NCBI RefSeq assembly: GCF_006345805.1 | Contig: NC_043002.1 | Span: 77,500,001-77,564,000 of the forward strand | Length of the DNA stretch: 64,000 bases | Direction of reading: 5' to 3' | Source: Octopus sinensis | Taxonomy: Eukaryota | Part shown: piece by piece, positions 1,661 through 54,860 of the stretch | How positions within the stretch are numbered: the stretch's first letter is position 1 | How the letters are laid out: each line of letters begins with the position of its first letter | Translations under genes and position numbers: made by a program | The notes under the pieces: generated by a model | The model's input: only the letters and a program-made list of their open reading frames with translations | Database searches by the model: none | Told to the model about the DNA's origin: nothing

Positions 1661-1747
1661 GAGTTCGATTGGATTTAAAAAGTAACACTATCACCTTCAA
1701 ATGAATACCAATGCTGGATGCTTGTTTGAACTAGTTCACTTTGAAAA

Positions 1748-2023
1748 TGTGATAAGTGTGGTGAAAAGGAGCGTAACAGAACAAGGAAAAGAATTAGAAG
1801 TGTAATTTGGTCTTACCTGTAGAGATGAAGCCGGATTCGCCTTGAGCCAACTTGCTAGCGTCTTGTCGTCTTGGCGTCGTTCTCGAGTCTGACTGCGCTG
1901 GTTGATGCCGCACGTGCGTTCTGTCTTCTCTCACTTCCGCTTCCGCCGGCGCATGCGCCCTGCGAGACCTGCAGACCCACTTCCGCTCCCTCCATCTCTG
2001 TCACACTCCCTCATCACCACACA
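1748..2023 (-). repeat. 3' LTR
   Basis: Matches 5725-6000 apart from four small indels; I found no substitutions. Confidence 0.97.
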
Positions 2024-2038
2024 ACGCCCCCCTGATCT
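2024..2038 (-). other. Polypurine tract
   Basis: AGATCAGGGGGGCGT immediately precedes the 3' LTR on the element strand. Confidence 0.7.
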
Positions 2039-2060
2039 ATAGATCACTGAACCGGCTTCC

Positions 2061-5016
2061 TCACTCGCTCCCGCACCTGAGACTGGTTTCGTAGTCAGCC
2101 AACCAGGGAGAGGGTGCCGCTCCCTCTGTGGTCGCAGTGCGACCTGGACTTGTTTCTGGCGTGTTGCTGCCGACCTCGTCATCCTGTCTGTTGTTATCGT
2201 CTTGCCCACTGTTGCTTGTCCCATCCTCCGGGGCATGGACAATCCTCCGTATGTCCAAAACGTGGCATGGCATACCATCTACCGAGATGTTATTCTTTGA
2301 ATTTACGGAGGTTATAGTCCCCTTTCCCCATTGCGATGTACACCGTGCGTTCGGAGGTTTCACCCAGACTTCCTCCCCGACCTGTACGAAGGCGTGCTCT
2401 TCCTCTGCCCCGGGTCGCATTGATGTAGTACACGGATGCCTCCACTCGTACCTGAATATTGCCCTGTGTGGCACCGACTCCTCGGCCTGTCCTGATCTGG
2501 GCGACATGTTGTACCAAAACACGGCCTCGACTGGTGAAATGTGACCCCTCTCAGCCATGGCCTTGATGGTACGATGATGCCTTTCACCACCCCCCCGTTT
2601 CCACTTGGCCGGTATGCCGCCCTGAAGAAGCGGTTGACCTTCCACTCATCAAGCATTTCTCTCAGCGCCTCCGAGCGAAATGCAGTGCCGTTGTCCAGAA
2701 GCAGTTCATCCACGGGGCCTCGTTCCAGGAATATCTCGTTCAGCACTTTCGCAATTTCTTCTGCGGTTCCTGACCTCATCTCCCTCCATATGGCGAACCG
2801 CCCCGGTCCGCAGTCAACCATGAGAGGTATGTCCCCTGCCGGTAGTGTGTTATGTCCACCGCCAGTCGTCTCCAGTCCTGATCCACTGGAATACTTCCCG
2901 CTTCATGCACGACCGGAGCAGGGTCGATGGACTGGCACCTGTCACAACTGCTAACCACTCTCCGCACGCTCTGTCTTGTTACGTCGGAGTCGACTTTTCT
3001 GGCCAGGAACAACGTCCTGTCCACACCCATGTGATGCATGGTGTGCAGTCTCCGCAACTCCGAGTCGCTCAGATGGCATACTGCAGCTACATCCTGCTTC
3101 GCGTCCTCTGGCACTTGCAACCAGGCTCGCTTAACCCTGGTCAGGACGTCTGCCCTGTTCTTCTCGGAAGGCACAAAGATCACGCTCAGCTTCAGATTGA
3201 ACTCAGTGGTCAGTTCACGCAGTATCCCCAATCGACGCTTTACCAGCATCTCTGCAGCCCCTTTGGTCCGCACCCTCCGCTCATCGGTGATGACTGCCGT
3301 CGCCCAACCAAGTACAGTGGCTGAATCAGTCCTGATTTCTATGGTGTGCAACCCCCACTTCAAGGCTAGGTTCACCCCCTTCAGCACGGCTTCCAACTCC
3401 GCCACGTTGATGTGACTGCAGTCATCCATCTTCCTGAGCCAGGCTGCATCTTCCACCGTGACACCTCCCACTTCCAAGACAATCCCTATTGCGATGCTAC
3501 TGGCGTCACACCATACGATCCCGCTCTTTGATTTGGGAACGTACCAGCTGCCCCTCACCGGGTCCTCTGTTCTTACTCTGACCAGGACTTCCTGCATCAT
3601 GTCGATCGTCCTCTCCCCCACTTTATCATTCCACTTCACTCCTTCGGCTCGTCTCTTGATGAAGCTGCATGCTGTCCGGAGCCAGCCTGCAATCGGGTAG
3701 TGTCCCACCAGCTTCCCACACACAGAGAACAGCTCCCGTCTACTCATGCTGGCGCCCAGTTCAGGGATCTCATTCCCTCGCCGGAACACCAAGGCGCCGG
3801 CTTTGTCTCTCCATAGCTTGAGCCCAGTGCAGCACCTCCTCCTCCATAGCCTCTGGCGGCTTGGCGATCAGTCCAAAACTCTTCAGTGGCCTATGACCTC
3901 CGTTGCTGGTATCACGGTTTCATCCACCAGAATGTCGTCGATGTATGAATTGGTGGCCCTTTTTACTCTGTCCACCTTCCCCAGGACGGCCTTGAGAATT
4001 GTTGCCATAATCTTTGGAGCTGAATTCAGCCCGAATCCCAACCTGGTCAGACAGTACGTCCGCCCCTATACCTGACGAGCTGGTACCTCCATAGTTTCTC
4101 AGCCACATGAACCTGAAGGTATGCCGACTTCAAATCGACAATCGTGAGGCCCCCGCCGTCTGCCTCCACTCTCGCAAGGTGTCTCCGCAGACATCCGTGG
4201 CCTCGCCGCCTGTATGACACGACACGTGGTCATTCAGCTCTCGGAAGTCGAGCACTGGCCTGACCTTACGTTTTGTGGGCTGTATCACCGCCATCAGTGG
4301 CAGGACTCCGCTCTCTTCTTTTTCCCAGGGGATCAGTATGCCCTCCTTAATCCACCGCTCCACCTCCCCCTCGAACTCACTTCTGGCATCTCCTTTTAGA
4401 GTATGCTGATAGCAGCCCACTTTGTTCTTTAACATCGGGGGCTCTCCCTTCCAGTGCCACTCCACTGTCCACCTCTCGCCATCAAAGACAGCCCGAAAAT
4501 CCTGGTCTTCAATGGTGTGCGCCGCATCCATTTCCTCACGGTTGTCGTCGGTGCGTGGTGTCGCCCTACACGGCTTCCCTGCTAGCCCAAACGTTACGCC
4601 AGCCTCGTTGACGGTAACACCTCCCAGACGGGTGATCGCATCCATCCCCATCACCACGTCGATCTCGTCCACCAAGTGACCGACCACAATCGCTCGCACG
4701 TCAGCTGAAGTCCCTGCACCACGATCTGCGCATCCGTAACCCCTTCGCAGTGCACTTCTCTTCCGTCGACTGCCCTGACACTGCCTCCTCCACTCCACGT
4801 CTCTGCCACTTCTGTGGTCATCAGGGTCGTCGTACAGCCCGTGTCCACCAGGGCTCGCGACATCTTCCCCTTCACCAGAATGTCGACCACAGGTAACGAT
4901 GAGAAACGCGCCGCTACTAATCCAAAGGGACAACTACCGGCGCAGTAGTCTCCCGCGGTCCGTTTCCCCGCAGACACTCGCTGGCCACATGCCCCGGCTC
5001 TCGGCACCGGTAGCAA
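2061..5016 (-). pseudogene. pol: pol (protease, RT, RNase H, integrase), broken by frameshifts
   Basis: Protease ALVDTGCTTT; RT VRPVLDFRELN, IVDLKSAYLQ, LGFGLNSAP and YIDD (3934-3945); RNase H VWCDASS, HINVAELEAV, IRTDS, NRADVLTR; integrase HTMHH..CDRC, LAVDITH, LLDNGTAF, ERHHRTIK. Confidence 0.93.
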
Positions 5017-5671
5017 ATCACCTCGGGCTTGGGCGACGCGCAGTCACGGACCATGTGTGGGCCCTGGCACCGGAAACACTGTCCCTTAAACGACCGCACG
5101 CGTTCTTTCCCCAGCCCCTCTCCGTTGCTCCTAGCTGGGCCACTTTTCGACGTTGCAGTCGCTGCTACCGACGTCGACCTGCTGCACGACACCAGTACAC
5201 GTGCCCGCGATATAATCTCGGCCATCGGCATCGAACGCACGTTCGGGAGCTTCTGTAGCTGACCGACATGATGTCGGGAAAGCCGGTCACGAACGCACAA
5301 CCTGACCGTGCGTTCTAGCGACTCTCCTCATATCCCGCAAGTTTTGCCAACCTTCTAAGCTCGCCGGCGAACACGTCCACCTGCTGTCCTGTCCACCTCA
5401 TCCTACCCAGTCGAGTGTACGCTTCGAACATTCCTTCCGCGAAGGCCTCCATAAGTCGGATCTCCACCTTGTCCGCGCTGCGTTGGTCCGCTTCCTCCAT
5501 CTCCAGATATAACGCCAACGCCAGGCCATCCAAATACAACGGCATAAAACTAGCCAGGTCAGCTATGCCGTGTAGCTTCGCCACCAACTTCACCCTCCTC
5601 AACCAAGCGACCACGTCGGTGTCGCCGCAAAACGGTGTTATAGGGTCGCGTGAAATCATAGCAGTCTGCAT
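4917..5671 (-). pseudogene. gag: gag with two zinc knuckles, frameshifted near 5300-5320
   Basis: ATG at 5671 (MQTAMISRDPITPFCGD...); knuckles CFRCQGPHMVRDC and CYRCREPGHVASEC. Confidence 0.9.
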
Positions 5672-5712
5672 AATTTTTATTTTTTATTTTCACGAAACCG
5701 AGTGATTATTTT

Positions 5713-5724
5713 GCCGAAATAGCT
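5713..5724 (-). other. Putative non-canonical primer-binding site AGCTATTTCGGC
   Basis: Directly abuts the 5' LTR and has no TGG start. Its reverse complement GCCGAAATAGCT equals nt 1-12 of metazoan tRNA-Phe(GAA) as I recall it. Confidence 0.7.
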
Positions 5725-6000
5725 TGTGATAAGTGTGGTGAAAAGGAGCGTAACAGAACAAGGAAAAGAATTAGAAGTGTAATTTGGTCTTACCTGTAGA
5801 GATGAAGCCGATTCGCCTTGAGCCAACTTGCTAGCGTCTTGTCGTCTTGGCGTCGTTCTCGAGTCTGACTGCGCTGGTTGATGCCGCACGTGCGTTCTGT
5901 CTCTCACTTCCGCTTCCGCCGGCGCATGCGCCCTGCGAGACCTGCAAGACCCACTTCCGCTCCCTCCATCTCTGTCACACTCCCTCATCACCACACCACA
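5725..6000 (-). repeat. 5' LTR
   Basis: Direct repeat of 1748-2023. Confidence 0.97.
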
Positions 6001-6420
6001 GAAAACATTGTGAGTGATGGACTGTTGATAAAATTGTAGTGACTAGGATGCATAATTGCACACAGAGCAATGTGCAGTTGCTGCAGTAGAAGCATGTTGG
6101 TCAGTGTTATATATGCTGCAGATAATGTTTTATTAAAAAAGTTTGGGATGTGAATAAATCTCCACTCTCCTCTTGATTATCAATTATATACTCTACGAAA
6201 TATTTGCGGTTCTGAATAGAAACATGGAACTACCCGACAAGTGAAGCTTTCAAGAACCAGTATCTCTTTTAAGCTTGAGTACTATGTAATTGGATCATTG
6301 TGCATAGCCAGCATCTATACACATTTGTGAGATAATATGGTATCCACCAGGATAATTTATCTCTTTTAAACTCTCTCTCTATATATATATGTATGTGTGT
6401 GTGTATATATATATATATAT

Positions 6421-6775
6421 AAAGCACCATTCAAGCGTGATTGTTACCAGAGTCGCCTTCCTGGCACATGAAAAAATATTCAAGCAAGGTCGTTGCCAGT
6501 GCCACTGGACTGGATCCTGTGCAGGTGGCACATAAAAAACACCATCTGAATGTGGTCGTTACCAGTACCGCCTGACTGGCCCTCATGCTGGTGGCACGTA
6601 AAAGCACCCACTACACTCTCGGAGTGGTTGTCATTAGGAAGGGAATCCAGCTGTAGAATCTCTGCCAGATCAGACTGGGGCCTGGTGCAGCCATCTGGTT
6701 CGCCAGTTCTCAGTCAAATCGGCTAACCATGCCAGCATGGAAAGCAGATGTCAAACGCTGATAATGATGATGATA
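6421..6775 (+). mobile_element. RTE 3' UTR fragment with (GAT)n tail
   Basis: Same sequence as 54200-54693, including degenerate 63-bp units and the AAAGCACCCACTACACTCTCGGAGTGG block. Confidence 0.85.
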
Positions 6776-7604
6776 TATATATATATATATATATATACAT
6801 CTCTTCCTCGCATTTCCACTTCATGCACTATACTTACCTCCCACTCCCCAATCATGTCCTCTTGGCTCTGTTTCACTGTATCATTTCATTGCTATCCACT
6901 AGCCTCTGACAAGAAAACTTTCACACACCCTATCCCAACAAAAAAAATCTACATCTCTATATTTCTTTTCCTCATATTTCCTCCTTCATACACTATGCCC
7001 ATCTCTCACTCCCCAATCCTGTCCTCACAACCCTGATTCTGTGTATTATTGCTATCCAACCCTCCATTCCTTCTATATATACCCAGGTCTTCACCACTCA
7101 CTTCCTCATCCCTCTGCACTCTCTAATCCCATTCTTTTTGCAATATCCTGCCACTTATAGTATGACCTTCAAATCTCAAAGGTATGTCCTGGCATTTTCC
7201 ACCATCTATATCTCTCTCTTCCTTTACTCAACCATCCCATTTATATTCTGATCCACCGGCTGTTGTGAGTATATCCAGCACTTTCCCCACCATCTAAATC
7301 ATGCTATCTCCCACTCTCTCTCTTCTGCACTTCCCTCAGGTTGGGTAACCATGTATCTCCTTGCAGGCAGCAGCACACCTGCTTGTCTTCATTCTTGATA
7401 TCTCTCTCTCTCTCTCTCTCTCTCTGGCTGGGTAACCTTGTATCTCCTCTACAGCAAAACACCTGTTTGTCTCTCTGTCTCACTATAACCTTTCATCATC
7501 TTACACAAGGTCACCTCCTCATATGCCCCCTTTTTTCGCAAATGGTTTTTGTCTTGCAAGTACTTGTTGACCCGTCAGTAAAGGTGCCACTTAAAAAGCT
7601 TCCC

Positions 7605-8753
7605 CCGCCCCTCCTTCCAAAATTCATTTGTCCATGACAGAAAATACTACTCCAGTACTGTTCTGACCATGTCTACAGAATTCATATTTTTTCCATCCAA
7701 ACGATTTTCAAGACTGCTGAATAAATGATAACCAGATGGGACAATATCCGGTGAATATGGTGGGTGGGGTATCATTTCCCATTCAAACTGCTCCAGCCTT
7801 TGAAATGTCATCCTCACTGTATGTAGCTGGGCATTATCCTGATGGAGGAACACCTTTCATCTTGAAACCAAAGATGGTCGGGGTTTTTTTTCTAGTGCTA
7901 ATTTAAGCCACTTGAGCTGCTCACAGGAGATCTCCTTTGTCGTCATTTGGTTTGGGTTTAAAAGTTCAAAGTAGACTAAACCTTTCATATCCCACCAAAC
8001 AGATAACAATACCTTACATGGGTGAAGACTGCCTAGGGTGCCAGCATTTCTCCTTTTCCTACACACTGTCTTCAGTGCTTAACATTTTTTTTTATAGAGA
8101 ACCCATTTCTTGTCACCAGTCACTATTCAGTCCAAAAAAGATTCATTTGTGAGATGTGACAGCAAAGAGAACACATTCACTTTCTGCATGTGATTAGACT
8201 CAGAAAGTTTGTGAGGAGCCCATTGATCCAATTTGCTGACTTTTCTGATGGCACACAAGTGTTGATGAGCTAAAAAGTCAGAGACCAAATCCAAGCTTCT
8301 CTGCTAGTTCTTCAACTGTTACAATGGGATTTTGTTCCGCCAGGGTTTGCAAGACGTTCTTGTTAAGCTCTACATATCTTCCAAGATGAGGTTCATCTTC
8401 TAAGCTGTAGTTTCCAGCTCAGAAATTGTGGAATTGCCGTTGACACTGGCTTATGCTTATTGTCTGATCCCTATATACTGTATCAATATTCCTCACACTT
8501 TCCATTGTGTTGTTGCCTCCACTGAACTCATAAAGAAAAATATGCCAAATATGCTCCTTTGTCACTTTTTTACAGCTTTGAAAAAATAACTGTTAAAATC
8601 GAACTGCACTCTTCAAAACTATCACTAGAAATAAGGACAAGGTAAAACTACTACCTGTTTTTATTGCAAGTTGATGCAAGTAGTTTATCCTGTCCCCCTC
8701 TGACTTTTAGCTCATGCAATTGAAAAAGCCACATTCTTTATGGGATGACCCAA
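7605..8753 (-). mobile_element. Degenerate mariner transposon, one end truncated
   Basis: Peptides KVLLSVWWDMKGLVYFELL, LHQDNA and HPPYSPDIVPSGYHLF; TIR ...TTTATGGGATGACCCAA at 8737-8753, same family as 34112-35387. Confidence 0.9.
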
Positions 8754-8799
8754 CATATATACATATATATATACATATATATATATATATTATATATAT

Positions 8800-8861
<62 letters not shown>

Positions 8862-8864
8862 TGG

Positions 8865-9120
8865 CACTCATGCCAGTAGAACGTTAAAAGCACATCCGAG
8901 CGTGATTTTTTCCAGGGCCACAGATTGGCCCTCATGCCAGTGGGATGTAAAAAGCACCCACTACACTCTCAGAGTGGTTAATGTTAGGAAGGACATCCAG
9001 CTGTAGAAACTTTGCCAAACCAGATTGAGCCTGGTGTGGCCTCTGATTCACCAGTCCTCAATCAAACCGTCCAGCCCATGCCAGCATGGAAAGCAGACGT
9101 TAAACAATGATGATGATGAT

Positions 9121-9122
<2 letters not shown>
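8865..9122 (+). mobile_element. RTE 3' UTR fragment
   Basis: Matches the other RTE tails and ends in (GAT)n. Confidence 0.85.
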
Positions 9123-9189
<67 letters not shown>

Positions 9190-11332: not shown

Positions 11333-14085
11333 TATGAGAACTATTTTTATTGAATTGATATTGAAAGACAATTCTTTTATTTGAATTTCTGAGCTGAGGA
11401 ATTATCTCTATTATACACAGATATGAGATGGTAATCTAGCAGAATTGTTGGCATATGGACAAAATGCTTAGTGACATTTCTACCAGCTTTATGTCCTGAG
11501 TTCATATGCCACCAAGGTTGACACTGTCTTTCATCCTTTTGAGGTTGATAAAATAAGTATCTGTTGACGCCCAGTGCTCAACAGATTGATGTAACTAATT
11601 AGCCATTTGCCCTCAAAATTGCAGATCTTGTGCTAAAAAGAAATATGCACAAATGTATTTGAACTGGAAAAGACTGGAGGATACAGCAACCAAAGCATAA
11701 CTATAACAACCAAATTAAAAGCATTAATTGAAATAGATCAGTGTATAACAATGTTGAAATATCAATCAGTATTTCCATAATCCTATACAAAACATCATAT
11801 TTGTTCTAATGTGTTTTCTCACTAAAAAAAAAATCACTGATTTAATGATTTAACAGGTCTTAAAATGTTCATGGTAATGAAAAAGATTTTAAAATAAATT
11901 CATTAAGGGGCAAATTTAATAAAGAACTCAATACTGATATCACGACCTGCTCCTTGTTACTTTTAATTTTATACATTCATTAATAGTTGATACTATAATT
12001 CACTTCTTAAATTTTTGTACACAATACAATCATTTTCCTGTGAGAGACAACAACTTAGTCTTATTCTTAGGGCCTTCATTTGTGAGAGTTGACTAGATGT
12101 CTGTAACTGGAAACTCACTCTCCAGGTTATATTTTTATGGAAGACTAACAGTTGTCCATGCAACAAATCTCTCCTCTCCATAGCACCAATATTCTTTTCT
12201 ACTCTAGGCACAAGGCCTGAAATTTTGGAGGAATTGCCAGTCAATTAGATTGACCCCAGTATGCAACTGATACTTAATTTATCAACCCTACAATGTCTCC
12301 CCACAAGAAATTGTACTTAGTTCTTTGCTTAACCCTTTTATCTCTAAAATTTATGGAAATCCTTTTCATTCCACATTTTCCCTATAAACATCAATCTTCA
12401 GAAATTCAAACTAAATATCAATAGGTTCACCCTGATCAGTTTGAAGTGGTCTGCAAAAGCTTTAGGCATTGTCTCTTCCTAAGGCTTATTTTATATTCAG
12501 TTGATCAAAGGTAGACAGCAGCAGTATTCATAGTAGGTCTTTCCAACTGTTGAGGTCAAAATAGTTGAATGTTCAATGATGTGAATGATAGGAAATATAT
12601 CAAGGAAGCATTCTACATACTACAAATACAGTATGCTCACAGATGTAAAAACAATTTAAAAAAAAAAATTGATCAAATTATGCAAGCAGTGGTAAGCAAA
12701 ATCTCCCTCAAGAGGTTTTTAAAATTCAAAAACAAGCAAGAGAGATTAACTCAAGTCTACTTTGTCTATATTACCCCACACTTTTGGTCAACTGATCTTA
12801 TGAGAGTAGCATCTCTTGCTTATTACATTTTGAGATACTTAACACTCTAAAGGAAGTTTTCTTTTCAATTAATTGTCTGGATAATCAGTTGATCAAGGTA
12901 TTTCAGCTCATTATATTATGTACATAAGATTCAACCTGGAATAATGCTGCACAACAGAGTTCACCTTGAACTCTGACAATTTAATGTCTGGAGAAGAATT
13001 ACAGAAAAGTAGAGGATTTGTAAAGTGTTGTAGTTCTGATATAAAAGTATTAAGCAAAATGTTCAGCACAGGCTTTGATAGTGAGACACAAGAGAGAGGT
13101 TTGGAGAGGAGAGACATAGTGAGACTAAATAACAATTTTTATAACATTAATTGAAAGCTAACTTGCATGAATGTAAAGAAAGATGTGAATCTCTCATGAG
13201 AATCACACTGAAAATAACATCTAAACAGAAAAGATGTGTCTTGTCTTAATGCTACAGAAACGAGTAATTATATTGTCACGGTATGTATATTATTGAATAC
13301 ACTGTAGTAGAGTTTAACATATTCCTTTTAAGATTGACTCAAATCTCTTAATGAACTTCTTTTATCCCACTTGGGAAATGGAATATTATATTTGCTAAGT
13401 CCACAGAATCCTTGACATTTCTAGACTTGCCTGATCTTTTACTCAAGATGATGTACTTTCAATTATCTTGTCTTATATCAGCATTCATTATTTCTAACAG
13501 AAGAGAGACAGACCTTGGTTTTCTAGTTAAATACACTGCTTACTACTTACTGGATTGGTGCAGGCATGGCTGTGTGGTTAAGCAGTTAGCTTTGTAACCA
13601 CATGGTTCCATATCCAATTCCATTGGATGCTATCTTGGATAAGTGTCTTCTATCATAGACTTTGCCTGACCAATTCTTTGTGAGTGGAAGTTAGTAAATG
13701 GAAACTGCAAAAATATTCCCATATAAATATGATCAGAACCTGGTGCAGCTCTTTGGCTTACCAGTTTTTAGTCAAACTGCCCAACCCATGCCAGCATAGA
13801 AAACAGACGTTAAATGATGATGATGATGTGTCTGTCTGTGTCTACGTTGATTACAGACTAAAAACCACTATTGTTGTTTATGTTCTGTCCCCTTATATTC
13901 CTATAATCAAGTAGTTTGACAGTTATATATTGATAAAGTAAATACTGGAGTTGATATAACAGATTAAATTCTTAAGTGTGGCTGCAATCCAATGACTAAA
14001 ATCAGTGAAAGAATAAAAAGAAATTAAGGAACAGGATTACATAAATTTCTGATTTGTTAACCATTAAAAAAAAATGTTTAAATAT

Positions 14086-54741: not shown

Positions 54742-54860
54742 CATATCTGACAGCTGTTTCGGCCGTGAGGACAAGTATGTCTCATTTAACCTATTAGCCA
54801 TATAAAGCAGGTATAAATGAGACATTAACAAGGATGTCTCACGGCCTCTTCAGAGAATTT
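54742..54860 (-). ncRNA. Type I hammerhead ribozyme candidate with greatly extended helix II
   Basis: CUGAAGA (plus 54847-54853); helix II GGCCGUGAG/CUCACGGCC, 9 bp, with a nested 12-bp stem; GAAA (54757-54760); ACAGCUGU palindrome; GUC cleavage between 54749 and 54748. Confidence 0.65.

Follow-up and report, generated by a model that had tools for sequence, protein, structure and literature searches.

Priming of minus-strand DNA is a defining step of retroviruses and long terminal repeat (LTR) elements. The textbook solutions are three: the 3' end of a tRNA, a half-tRNA produced by cleavage in the anticodon region, or self-priming. In copia and Ty5, the site pairs just 5' of the cut in the anticodon loop or stem, giving a primer of ~39 nucleotides (nt) that derives from initiator Met or Ile tRNA. 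In Tf1, RNase H cuts an RNA:RNA duplex after nt 11 of a 5'-terminal self-primer. Half-tRNA sites are summarised in PMC6317226, and 3'-end, half-tRNA and self-priming sites are listed in PMC6317226 and PMC5006619. Here, we describe an LTR retrotransposon in a 64-kb stretch of the Octopus sinensis genome (contig NC_043002.1, positions 77,500,001 to 77,564,000; hereafter the window) whose putative primer-binding site would pair with the 5' end of tRNA-Phe(GAA) rather than with its 3' end.

How does the octopus element compare with the described systems? It resembles copia, 1731, Ty5 and plant Osser and Bianca in that its primer would be a fragment of a host tRNA that includes the tRNA 5' end, with a 3'-OH made by an internal cut and a site without TGG. 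However, those elements belong to Ty1/copia, whereas the octopus element has a gypsy/retrovirus gene order, the tRNAs concerned are Phe and Lys, and the cut would fall in the D stem. A half-tRNA site matches an internal stretch that ends in the anticodon loop or stem, while the complementarity described here ends at U12, in the D stem. With Tf1 and the sushi elements, the octopus element shares a short site abutting the LTR (11 nt in Tf1, 12 nt here) and, on the reading that we favor, the release of a 5'-terminal RNA primer by a cut at the end of a duplex and the regeneration of the site by copying that primer. The difference is that the Tf1 RNA is the element's own transcript, with a complement in the LTR, whereas the partner in the octopus lineage would be a host tRNA. 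Canonical 3'-end priming likewise uses a host tRNA, a site directly or nearly directly after U5 (the unique 5' region of the LTR), a standard polypurine tract, LTRs and a target-site duplication (TSD). A canonical site, however, begins with TGG within 0–5 nt of the LTR and pairs with the 3'-terminal 8–18 nt of the tRNA, including CCA, whereas ACA is followed directly by the 12-mer at 16/16 junctions of the octopus element and its relatives. No report of a priming site that pairs with a tRNA 5' end was found in the searchable literature, much older subscription literature being outside its reach.

The 12-mer next to the 5' LTR

The element is compact (4.26 kb), lies on the minus strand and has two LTRs, running from 6000 to 5725 and from 2023 to 1748. 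Both have TG...CA termini, and four small indels are the only differences between them in the LTR alignment. The last bases of the 5' LTR are ...CACTTATCACA at 5725, and the 12-mer abuts them without a spacer and without TGG; it reads AGCTATTTCGGC on the element strand and GCCGAAATAGCT on the plus strand (5713–5724). The 3' LTR has the same ATCACA end, at 1748, followed by unrelated DNA with no 12-mer. Because the 3' LTR runs into the target duplication instead, the 12-mer is internal to the element and lies outside the LTR. The LTR boundary was set by the LTR alignment, the 5-bp TSD and the polypurine tract before the 3' LTR. A preliminary description of this locus, made from the letters of the window, had placed the 12-mer directly after the ATCACA of the 5' LTR, with neither TGG nor spacer; this placement is exact to the base, and the boundary is backed by the TSD. 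The exact 12-mer occurs only once within the window. A near-match, GCCGAAACAGCT at 54752–54763, is a chance match in unrelated sequence.

The 12-mer is the exact complement (12/12) of nt 1–12 of tRNA-Phe(GAA), with one edge at G1 and the other at the LTR. The preliminary description had given the metazoan tRNA-Phe(GAA) 5' sequence, together with a 12/12 match that ends at G1 and abuts the LTR, and both agree with published oligonucleotides. Human tRNA-Phe forward primers read GCCGAAATAGCTCAGTTGGGAG(A) (PMC10505166; PMC2175372), and a Drosophila tRNA-Phe 5' probe, GCTCTCCCAACTGAGCTATTTCGGC, gives the same tRNA 5' sequence (PMC7038984). The 5' end of human tRNA-Lys3, used for comparison with relatives, also comes from a published primer (PMC2175372). 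The paired stretch of tRNA-Phe comprises the acceptor-stem strand (positions 1–7), U8, A9 and the D-stem bases G10–U12, and the 3' side of U12 in the annealed primer faces U5. The chance of a 12/12 match at a fixed position against the 5' ends of ~50 tRNA species is ~3e-6, rising to ~2e-4 if a match to any tRNA position is counted. A search with ARAGORN of the window and 19 loci (L001–L019) found no tRNA gene.

The features of the element in the window are as follows, in element order.

6001..6005, minus strand: target-site duplication TTTTC, upstream copy, adjoining the start of the 5' LTR
5725..6000, minus strand: 5' LTR, 276 nt, beginning TGTGGTG and terminating TTATCACA
5713..5724, minus strand: putative primer-binding site AGCTATTTCGGC, complement of tRNA-Phe(GAA) nt 1–12 (G1 to U12)
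5672..5712, minus strand: A-rich leader, 41 nt, from the primer-binding site to the gag ATG, unconserved in relatives except for A at +13
4917..5671, minus strand: gag, ATG at 5671, with a CCHC zinc knuckle (zf-CCHC, 1.9e-07)
2061..5016, minus strand: pol, with protease (DTG), compact reverse transcriptase (RT), DUF7047, RNase H, and H2C2 + rve integrase, from Pfam matches and the order of open reading frames (ORFs)
2034..2045, minus strand: inverted repeat GATCT-AT-AGATC, directly upstream of the polypurine tract
2024..2033, minus strand: polypurine tract AGGGGGGCGT, preceding the 3' LTR
1748..2023, minus strand: 3' LTR, 276 nt, terminating ATCACA, then the target duplication
1743..1747, minus strand: target-site duplication TTTTC, downstream copy, adjoining the end of the 3' LTR

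Relatives and conservation of the site

Relatives and their flanks were taken from NCBI assemblies and from contigs of metagenomes and metagenome-assembled genomes (MAGs), with LTR pairs identified by self-alignment and gag by tblastn. There are 308 relative proteins at E <= 1e-10, from cephalopods, a sea slug, barnacles, mantis shrimp, crabs, a sea spider, a bryozoan, Hydra and Trichuris; the closest matches are from Octopus sinensis itself, at 97% identity, and a scan of viral contigs found no relatives. The element lineage is widely distributed in marine invertebrates. Sixteen junctions were readable. Their sources are O. sinensis (two subfamilies, with LTRs ~76–80% alike), O. bimaculoides (L003), Plakobranchus (L005), the barnacle Amphibalanus (L006), the bryozoan Watersipora (L007), Oratosquilla (L004 and L019) and nine metagenome or MAG contigs, and the proteins of the 16 elements are 41–70% identical to those of the window. 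The second octopus subfamily is represented by L001b. Two loci were uninformative, L002, where a deletion in the 5' LTR took the junction, and L004, which is without a 3' LTR. Also uninformative were four 5'-truncated or disrupted loci, L008 (Hydra), L016 (Trichuris), L017 and L018.

At all 16 junctions, the LTR ends in ...ACA and is followed directly by a 12-mer that fits the pattern AGCTA....GGC. The Phe 12-mer is unchanged in eleven elements. In the tRNA sense, the 12-mers are these.

GCCGAAATAGCT, tRNA-Phe nt 1–12: window/L001a, L001b, L003, L005, L006, L007, L009, L010, L013, L014
GCCCGGATAGCT, tRNA-Lys3 nt 1–12: L011 and L022, the flanks of the two being unrelated
GCCGCGATAGCT: L012
GCCGGAATAGCT: L023
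GCCTAGATAGCT: L019 (Oratosquilla; young copy)
GCCTTGGTAGCT: L004 (Oratosquilla; older copy, no 3' LTR)

Across these junctions, the last three bases of the LTR (ACA) have a column identity of 0.94–1.0. Within the site, identity is 100% at eight of the 12 positions and 69–94% at the other four; past +13, it is only ~0.3–0.6, and the flanks are not conserved. All variants have the form GCC-NNNN-TAGCT, with changes confined to tRNA positions 4–7. These are the positions where tRNA species differ, and U8-A9-G10-C11-U12 is common to many tRNAs. The preliminary description had proposed conservation of the LTR-adjacent 12-mer among copies and relatives as a test, along with a search for relatives matching the 5' ends of other tRNAs. 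The first held, in copies and in relatives from multiple phyla, with drifting flanks; the second was answered by L011 and L022, which match nt 1–12 of tRNA-Lys3.

The Phe-type site is dispersed throughout a neighbor-joining tree built from the RT piece, which makes this type the probable ancestral one. Copies 98–99% identical occur at separate octopus loci. Both L001 and L006 carry the Phe-type site; gag and pol are intact in these two elements, their LTRs are near-identical, and each has its own TSD. Intact copies thus keep the site, as the preliminary description would have it, and the same holds for the variant type in L019, where all gag and pol pieces are present in two consistent frames, the LTRs are near-identical and the element has its own TSD. 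Taken together, these comparisons suggest that the site of the lineage is the complement of the first 12 nt of a host tRNA, with tRNA-Phe(GAA) as the ancestral and commonest partner, tRNA-Lys(UUU) as the partner in some members, and a few further variants.

Three minor observations concern the surroundings of the site. Position +13 (5712 in the window) is A in 11/16 junctions (0.69), with the rest of the leader unconserved; speculatively, this excess may reflect a non-templated A added as plus-strand DNA synthesis runs off the 5' end of the primer. In L002 (8290–8310 compared with 12236–12260), the end of the 5' LTR and half of the primer site have been lost (GCTG^TTCGGC), in a deletion that spans from GCTGATTTCGCC in U5 to the similar GCTATTTCGGC of the site. 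The octopus subfamily of L002 has a same-sense look-alike of the site within U5. RNA folding around the site gave no structure common to the lineages.

A model for priming and its alternatives

Priming from a tRNA 5' end appears well supported by the comparative evidence. Since the 3'-OH of a primer must adjoin U5, either the tRNA would have to undergo cleavage after U12 or the primer would have to be a fragment with its end there. It is quite likely that the first 12 nt of a host tRNA, cut after U12, serve as the primer. How might such a primer be made and used? Genomic RNA would pair with nt 1–12 of the tRNA, ousting the tRNA's own 3' acceptor strand. The tRNA would then be cut between U12 and C13; the most economical agent would be the RNase H of the element, acting at the end of the RNA:RNA duplex. 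The new 3'-OH of U12 would prime minus-strand strong-stop DNA into U5. Plus-strand strong-stop synthesis would copy the attached 12-nt primer up to G1, regenerating exactly 12 nt for the second strand transfer, and this copying would keep resetting the site to the tRNA sequence. Copying of the primer to its 5' end could explain both the edge of conservation exactly at G1 and the identity of the site across phyla. A switch of tRNA, such as that from Phe to Lys3 (three changes, at positions 4–6), could occur via mispriming by a tRNA with the same GCC and UAGCU ends. The full reading is that a compact, retrovirus-like lineage found in several animal phyla primes reverse transcription from the first 12 nt of tRNA-Phe (in some members, of tRNA-Lys or another tRNA), freed after U12 by its own RNase H. 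We put the probability of this full reading at roughly 0.55.

Several points weigh against this reading. For the octopus, the 5' end of tRNA-Phe is an extrapolation from the human and Drosophila sequences. The known tRNA 5' fragments have their ends in the D loop or in the anticodon loop, and none is known to end with a D-stem cut between U12 and C13. Pairing would also demand that the acceptor stem and the D stem unfold. A U5 segment (GCUGAAA...) of L007 and L014 can pair imperfectly with the site. The variants GCCGCGA-, GCCGGAA-, GCCTAGA- and GCCTTGG-TAGCT could not be assigned to any tRNA, and a look-up of the variant 12-mers in the published literature returned unrelated PCR primers only. 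With variation in four positions only, the match to Lys3 alone has a chance of ~1% per variant and is thus moderately unlikely.

The alternatives differ in the molecule that they assign to the 12-mer. Closest to the favored reading is the proposal that a small RNA already present in the host, with the 3' end ...GCCGAAAUAGCU-3', acts as the primer. It would be either a 12-mer made by a host nuclease or a longer 5' fragment trimmed by a host exonuclease, rather than a product of the element's RNase H. Its footprint would equal that of the favored model, of which it is a variant and not a contradiction, and tRNA 5' fragments are abundant in animal cells according to reviews. Described 5' fragments are longer, though, at 14–35 nt (16–35 nt in PMC7515703), and any 3' overhang would block priming; this origin of the primer is unlikely, if the most credible of the alternatives. 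Less credible again is the idea that the 12-mer is a conserved cis-element, such as a packaging, dimerization or integrase/RT signal, with another primer in use and the tRNA identity due to coincidence or mimicry of the acceptor strand. The pattern GCC....TAGCT, held by all variants around four variable positions, is what a protein- or RNA-recognition motif might show, and the extrapolation of the host tRNA sequence leaves room for this idea. It must nonetheless contend with a 12/12 match bounded exactly by tRNA nt 1 and by the LTR (~3e-6 to 2e-4 by chance) at the obligatory primer position of LTR elements, and with variable positions that are those differing among tRNAs; it leaves the Lys3-type members unexplained. 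Moreover, no other candidate primer site was found, and the canonical TGGTGCCGAAA site, which would match the tRNA-Phe 3' end, was not found beside the LTR in 7/7 elements.

The remaining two alternatives dispense with a cut tRNA. Retron reverse transcriptases in bacteria prime from a 2'-OH, and an uncut tRNA-Phe annealed by nt 1–12 could similarly support synthesis from the 2'-OH of U12, an alternative that the preliminary description had already named. Such branch priming would leave an identical 12-nt footprint with no need for a nuclease, and murine leukemia virus RT is reported to read across 2',5' branches (PMC5399748). It is very improbable all the same, given that no LTR element or retrovirus is known to use a 2'-OH, that no sequence feature calls for it, and that the RT is of the ordinary RVT_1 type. 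Self-priming of the Tf1/sushi type, the least credible of the readings weighed here, would have the 5' end of the element's own transcript fold onto the 12-mer and be cut as the primer, with the likeness to tRNA-Phe incidental. A short site without TGG (12 nt, against 11 in Tf1) would suit this mechanism, as would a U5/R segment in L007 and L014, ~55 nt from the LTR end, that can form 7–10 bp of imperfect pairing, including G-U pairs. Self-priming predicts that the site co-varies with the LTR; instead, the site is identical across phyla whose LTRs cannot be aligned. The window LTR lacks a complement of the 12-mer even at two mismatches, and none of the loci contains the exact complement. Nine LTRs contain no exact or near-exact complement of the site, and their best pairing, G-U included, is no better than that of shuffled LTRs, in line with the preliminary description, which had seen no complement within the LTR and no sign of Tf1-style self-priming. 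In Tf1 and sushi elements, the first ~11 nt of the transcript, within the LTR, are exactly complementary to the site; the LTR scans gave no such complement. The U5 look-alike in the other octopus subfamily is same-sense, not complementary.

What are the implications of priming from a tRNA 5' end? If the favored reading is true, it would add a fourth priming route for LTR elements, one that links tRNA-fragment mechanisms with cleavage of the Tf1 type, and it would predict a nuclease activity that cuts tRNA within the D stem. LTR-annotation tools seek complements of tRNA 3' ends and would therefore score the lineage as lacking a site for the primer. Small host RNAs derived from the 5' ends of tRNAs would also become candidate inhibitors of elements of this lineage; for comparison, tRNA 3' fragments are described as such candidates for mammalian endogenous retroviruses in PMC7472051.

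Coding capacity, classification and neighboring repeats

The relatives have a uniform compact layout of ~4.0–4.6 kb. L001, a second octopus copy at another locus that is 98–99% identical, has an intact gag of 251 amino acids (aa; 8172–8927) and a pol of 986 aa. The two genes overlap in the -1 frame, and in intact relatives pol is reached from gag in this way, by a -1 frameshift. Intact pol ORFs of 986–987 aa are found in L001 and in the barnacle element L006. The size of 4.26 kb had suggested an internally deleted element, which is ruled out by the shared layout and the intact 986–987-aa pol. The copy in the window has about five private frame breaks, in gag near 5300–5315 and in pol near 4651–4933, 3792–4130, 2776–2821 and 2360–2645.

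The termini (TGTGG...ATCACA) and the TTTTC duplication are those of an LTR retrotransposon, for which TG...CA ends and a duplication of 4–6 bp are expected; relatives have the TSDs ATTTC (L003), AGGTC (L019) and CTTA (L005). The gene order, gag(CCHC)-protease-RT-RNase H-integrase, in which the RT is of the RVT_1 type and the integrase carries H2C2 + rve, places the element in the Ty3/gypsy-retrovirus supergroup. The gypsy label of the preliminary description thus stands as far as gene order, TG...CA termini and the 5-bp TSD are concerned. It does not extend to the RNase H, which matches PF00075/RVT_3 (the cellular/retroviral type) and not RT_RNaseH, to the DUF7047 domain that precedes the RNase H, or to the retroviral-like integrase profile. 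Hence, "gypsy" appears to fit in a broad sense only. The closest solved structures to the family integrase profile are retroviral integrases (mouse mammary tumor virus, 2e-15); these were reached by the profile only, single-sequence searches of the PDB giving no match. The family consensus retains CDAS, AELEA, TDS and NKAD, which we read as the probable catalytic motifs of the RNase H.

The RNase H type and the retroviral integrases as closest solved relatives are also points of likeness to Odin, lokiretroviruses and Retroviridae. Those have a tether, a degenerate RNase H domain, between RT and a newly acquired RNase H (PMC9040795), whereas the interval from the RT N-terminal motif to the start of RNase H is ~257 aa in the octopus element, 60 of them DUF7047. 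By length alone, this interval appears too short for a tether of the retroviral or Odin type, and a dual RNase H, or Odin-like, arrangement is unsupported on these length grounds. In addition, Odin has been reported solely from sea anemones. Troyka elements are defined by CG...CG termini and a 3-bp duplication (PMC12440569); with TG...CA termini and a 5-bp TSD, the octopus element is therefore not a Troyka element.

Some features of the element stand apart from the questions of priming and classification. Between protease and RT (~4300–4560 in the window) lies a conserved block of ~50 aa, DF.A.FDG.KW.V.W.W...L.N....Y..TL. Its spacing recalls the pre-RT region of BEL/Pao elements, although no BEL/Pao Pfam family was matched by the element proteins. 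Most members of the lineage carry the inverted repeat GATCTnnAGATC, or a close variant, directly before the G-rich polypurine tract; besides the window copy, these are L003, L005, L007, L013, L014, L019 and L022, where it lies just ahead of the 3' LTR. The repeat may form a conserved hairpin that helps to define the plus-strand primer. The window LTR contains a GCGCATGCGC palindrome (5930–5945, minus strand) and no TATA box; the palindrome resembles the NRF-1-type sites of promoters that lack a TATA box. At the corresponding position, the LTR of the second octopus subfamily reads GCATGCG.

Other observations concern the contigs from which relatives were drawn and the repeats that surround them. 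L020–L024, which are contigs of GTDB MAGs, and P0097 are animal retroelement contigs in "bacterial" MAGs, with affected bins labeled Granulosicoccaceae, Pseudomonadota, Planctomycetota and Bacteroidota; this points to eukaryotic contamination of the bins. L022 and L023 have identical ends of 141 and 127 nt. In L011 and L012, the order is integrase-LTR-gag, which tandem copies, one-LTR circles or assembly wrap-around would be expected to give. The young Oratosquilla copy in L019 (5335–10310) is nested in a far larger repeat, whose 4-kb copies are 87–89% alike. In the window itself, another repeated unit lies beside the element (6600–6800, 8950–9150 and 13786–13859); copies of this unit are ~2.35 kb apart and 85–91% alike, and they end in (GAT)n and (TA)n microsatellites.
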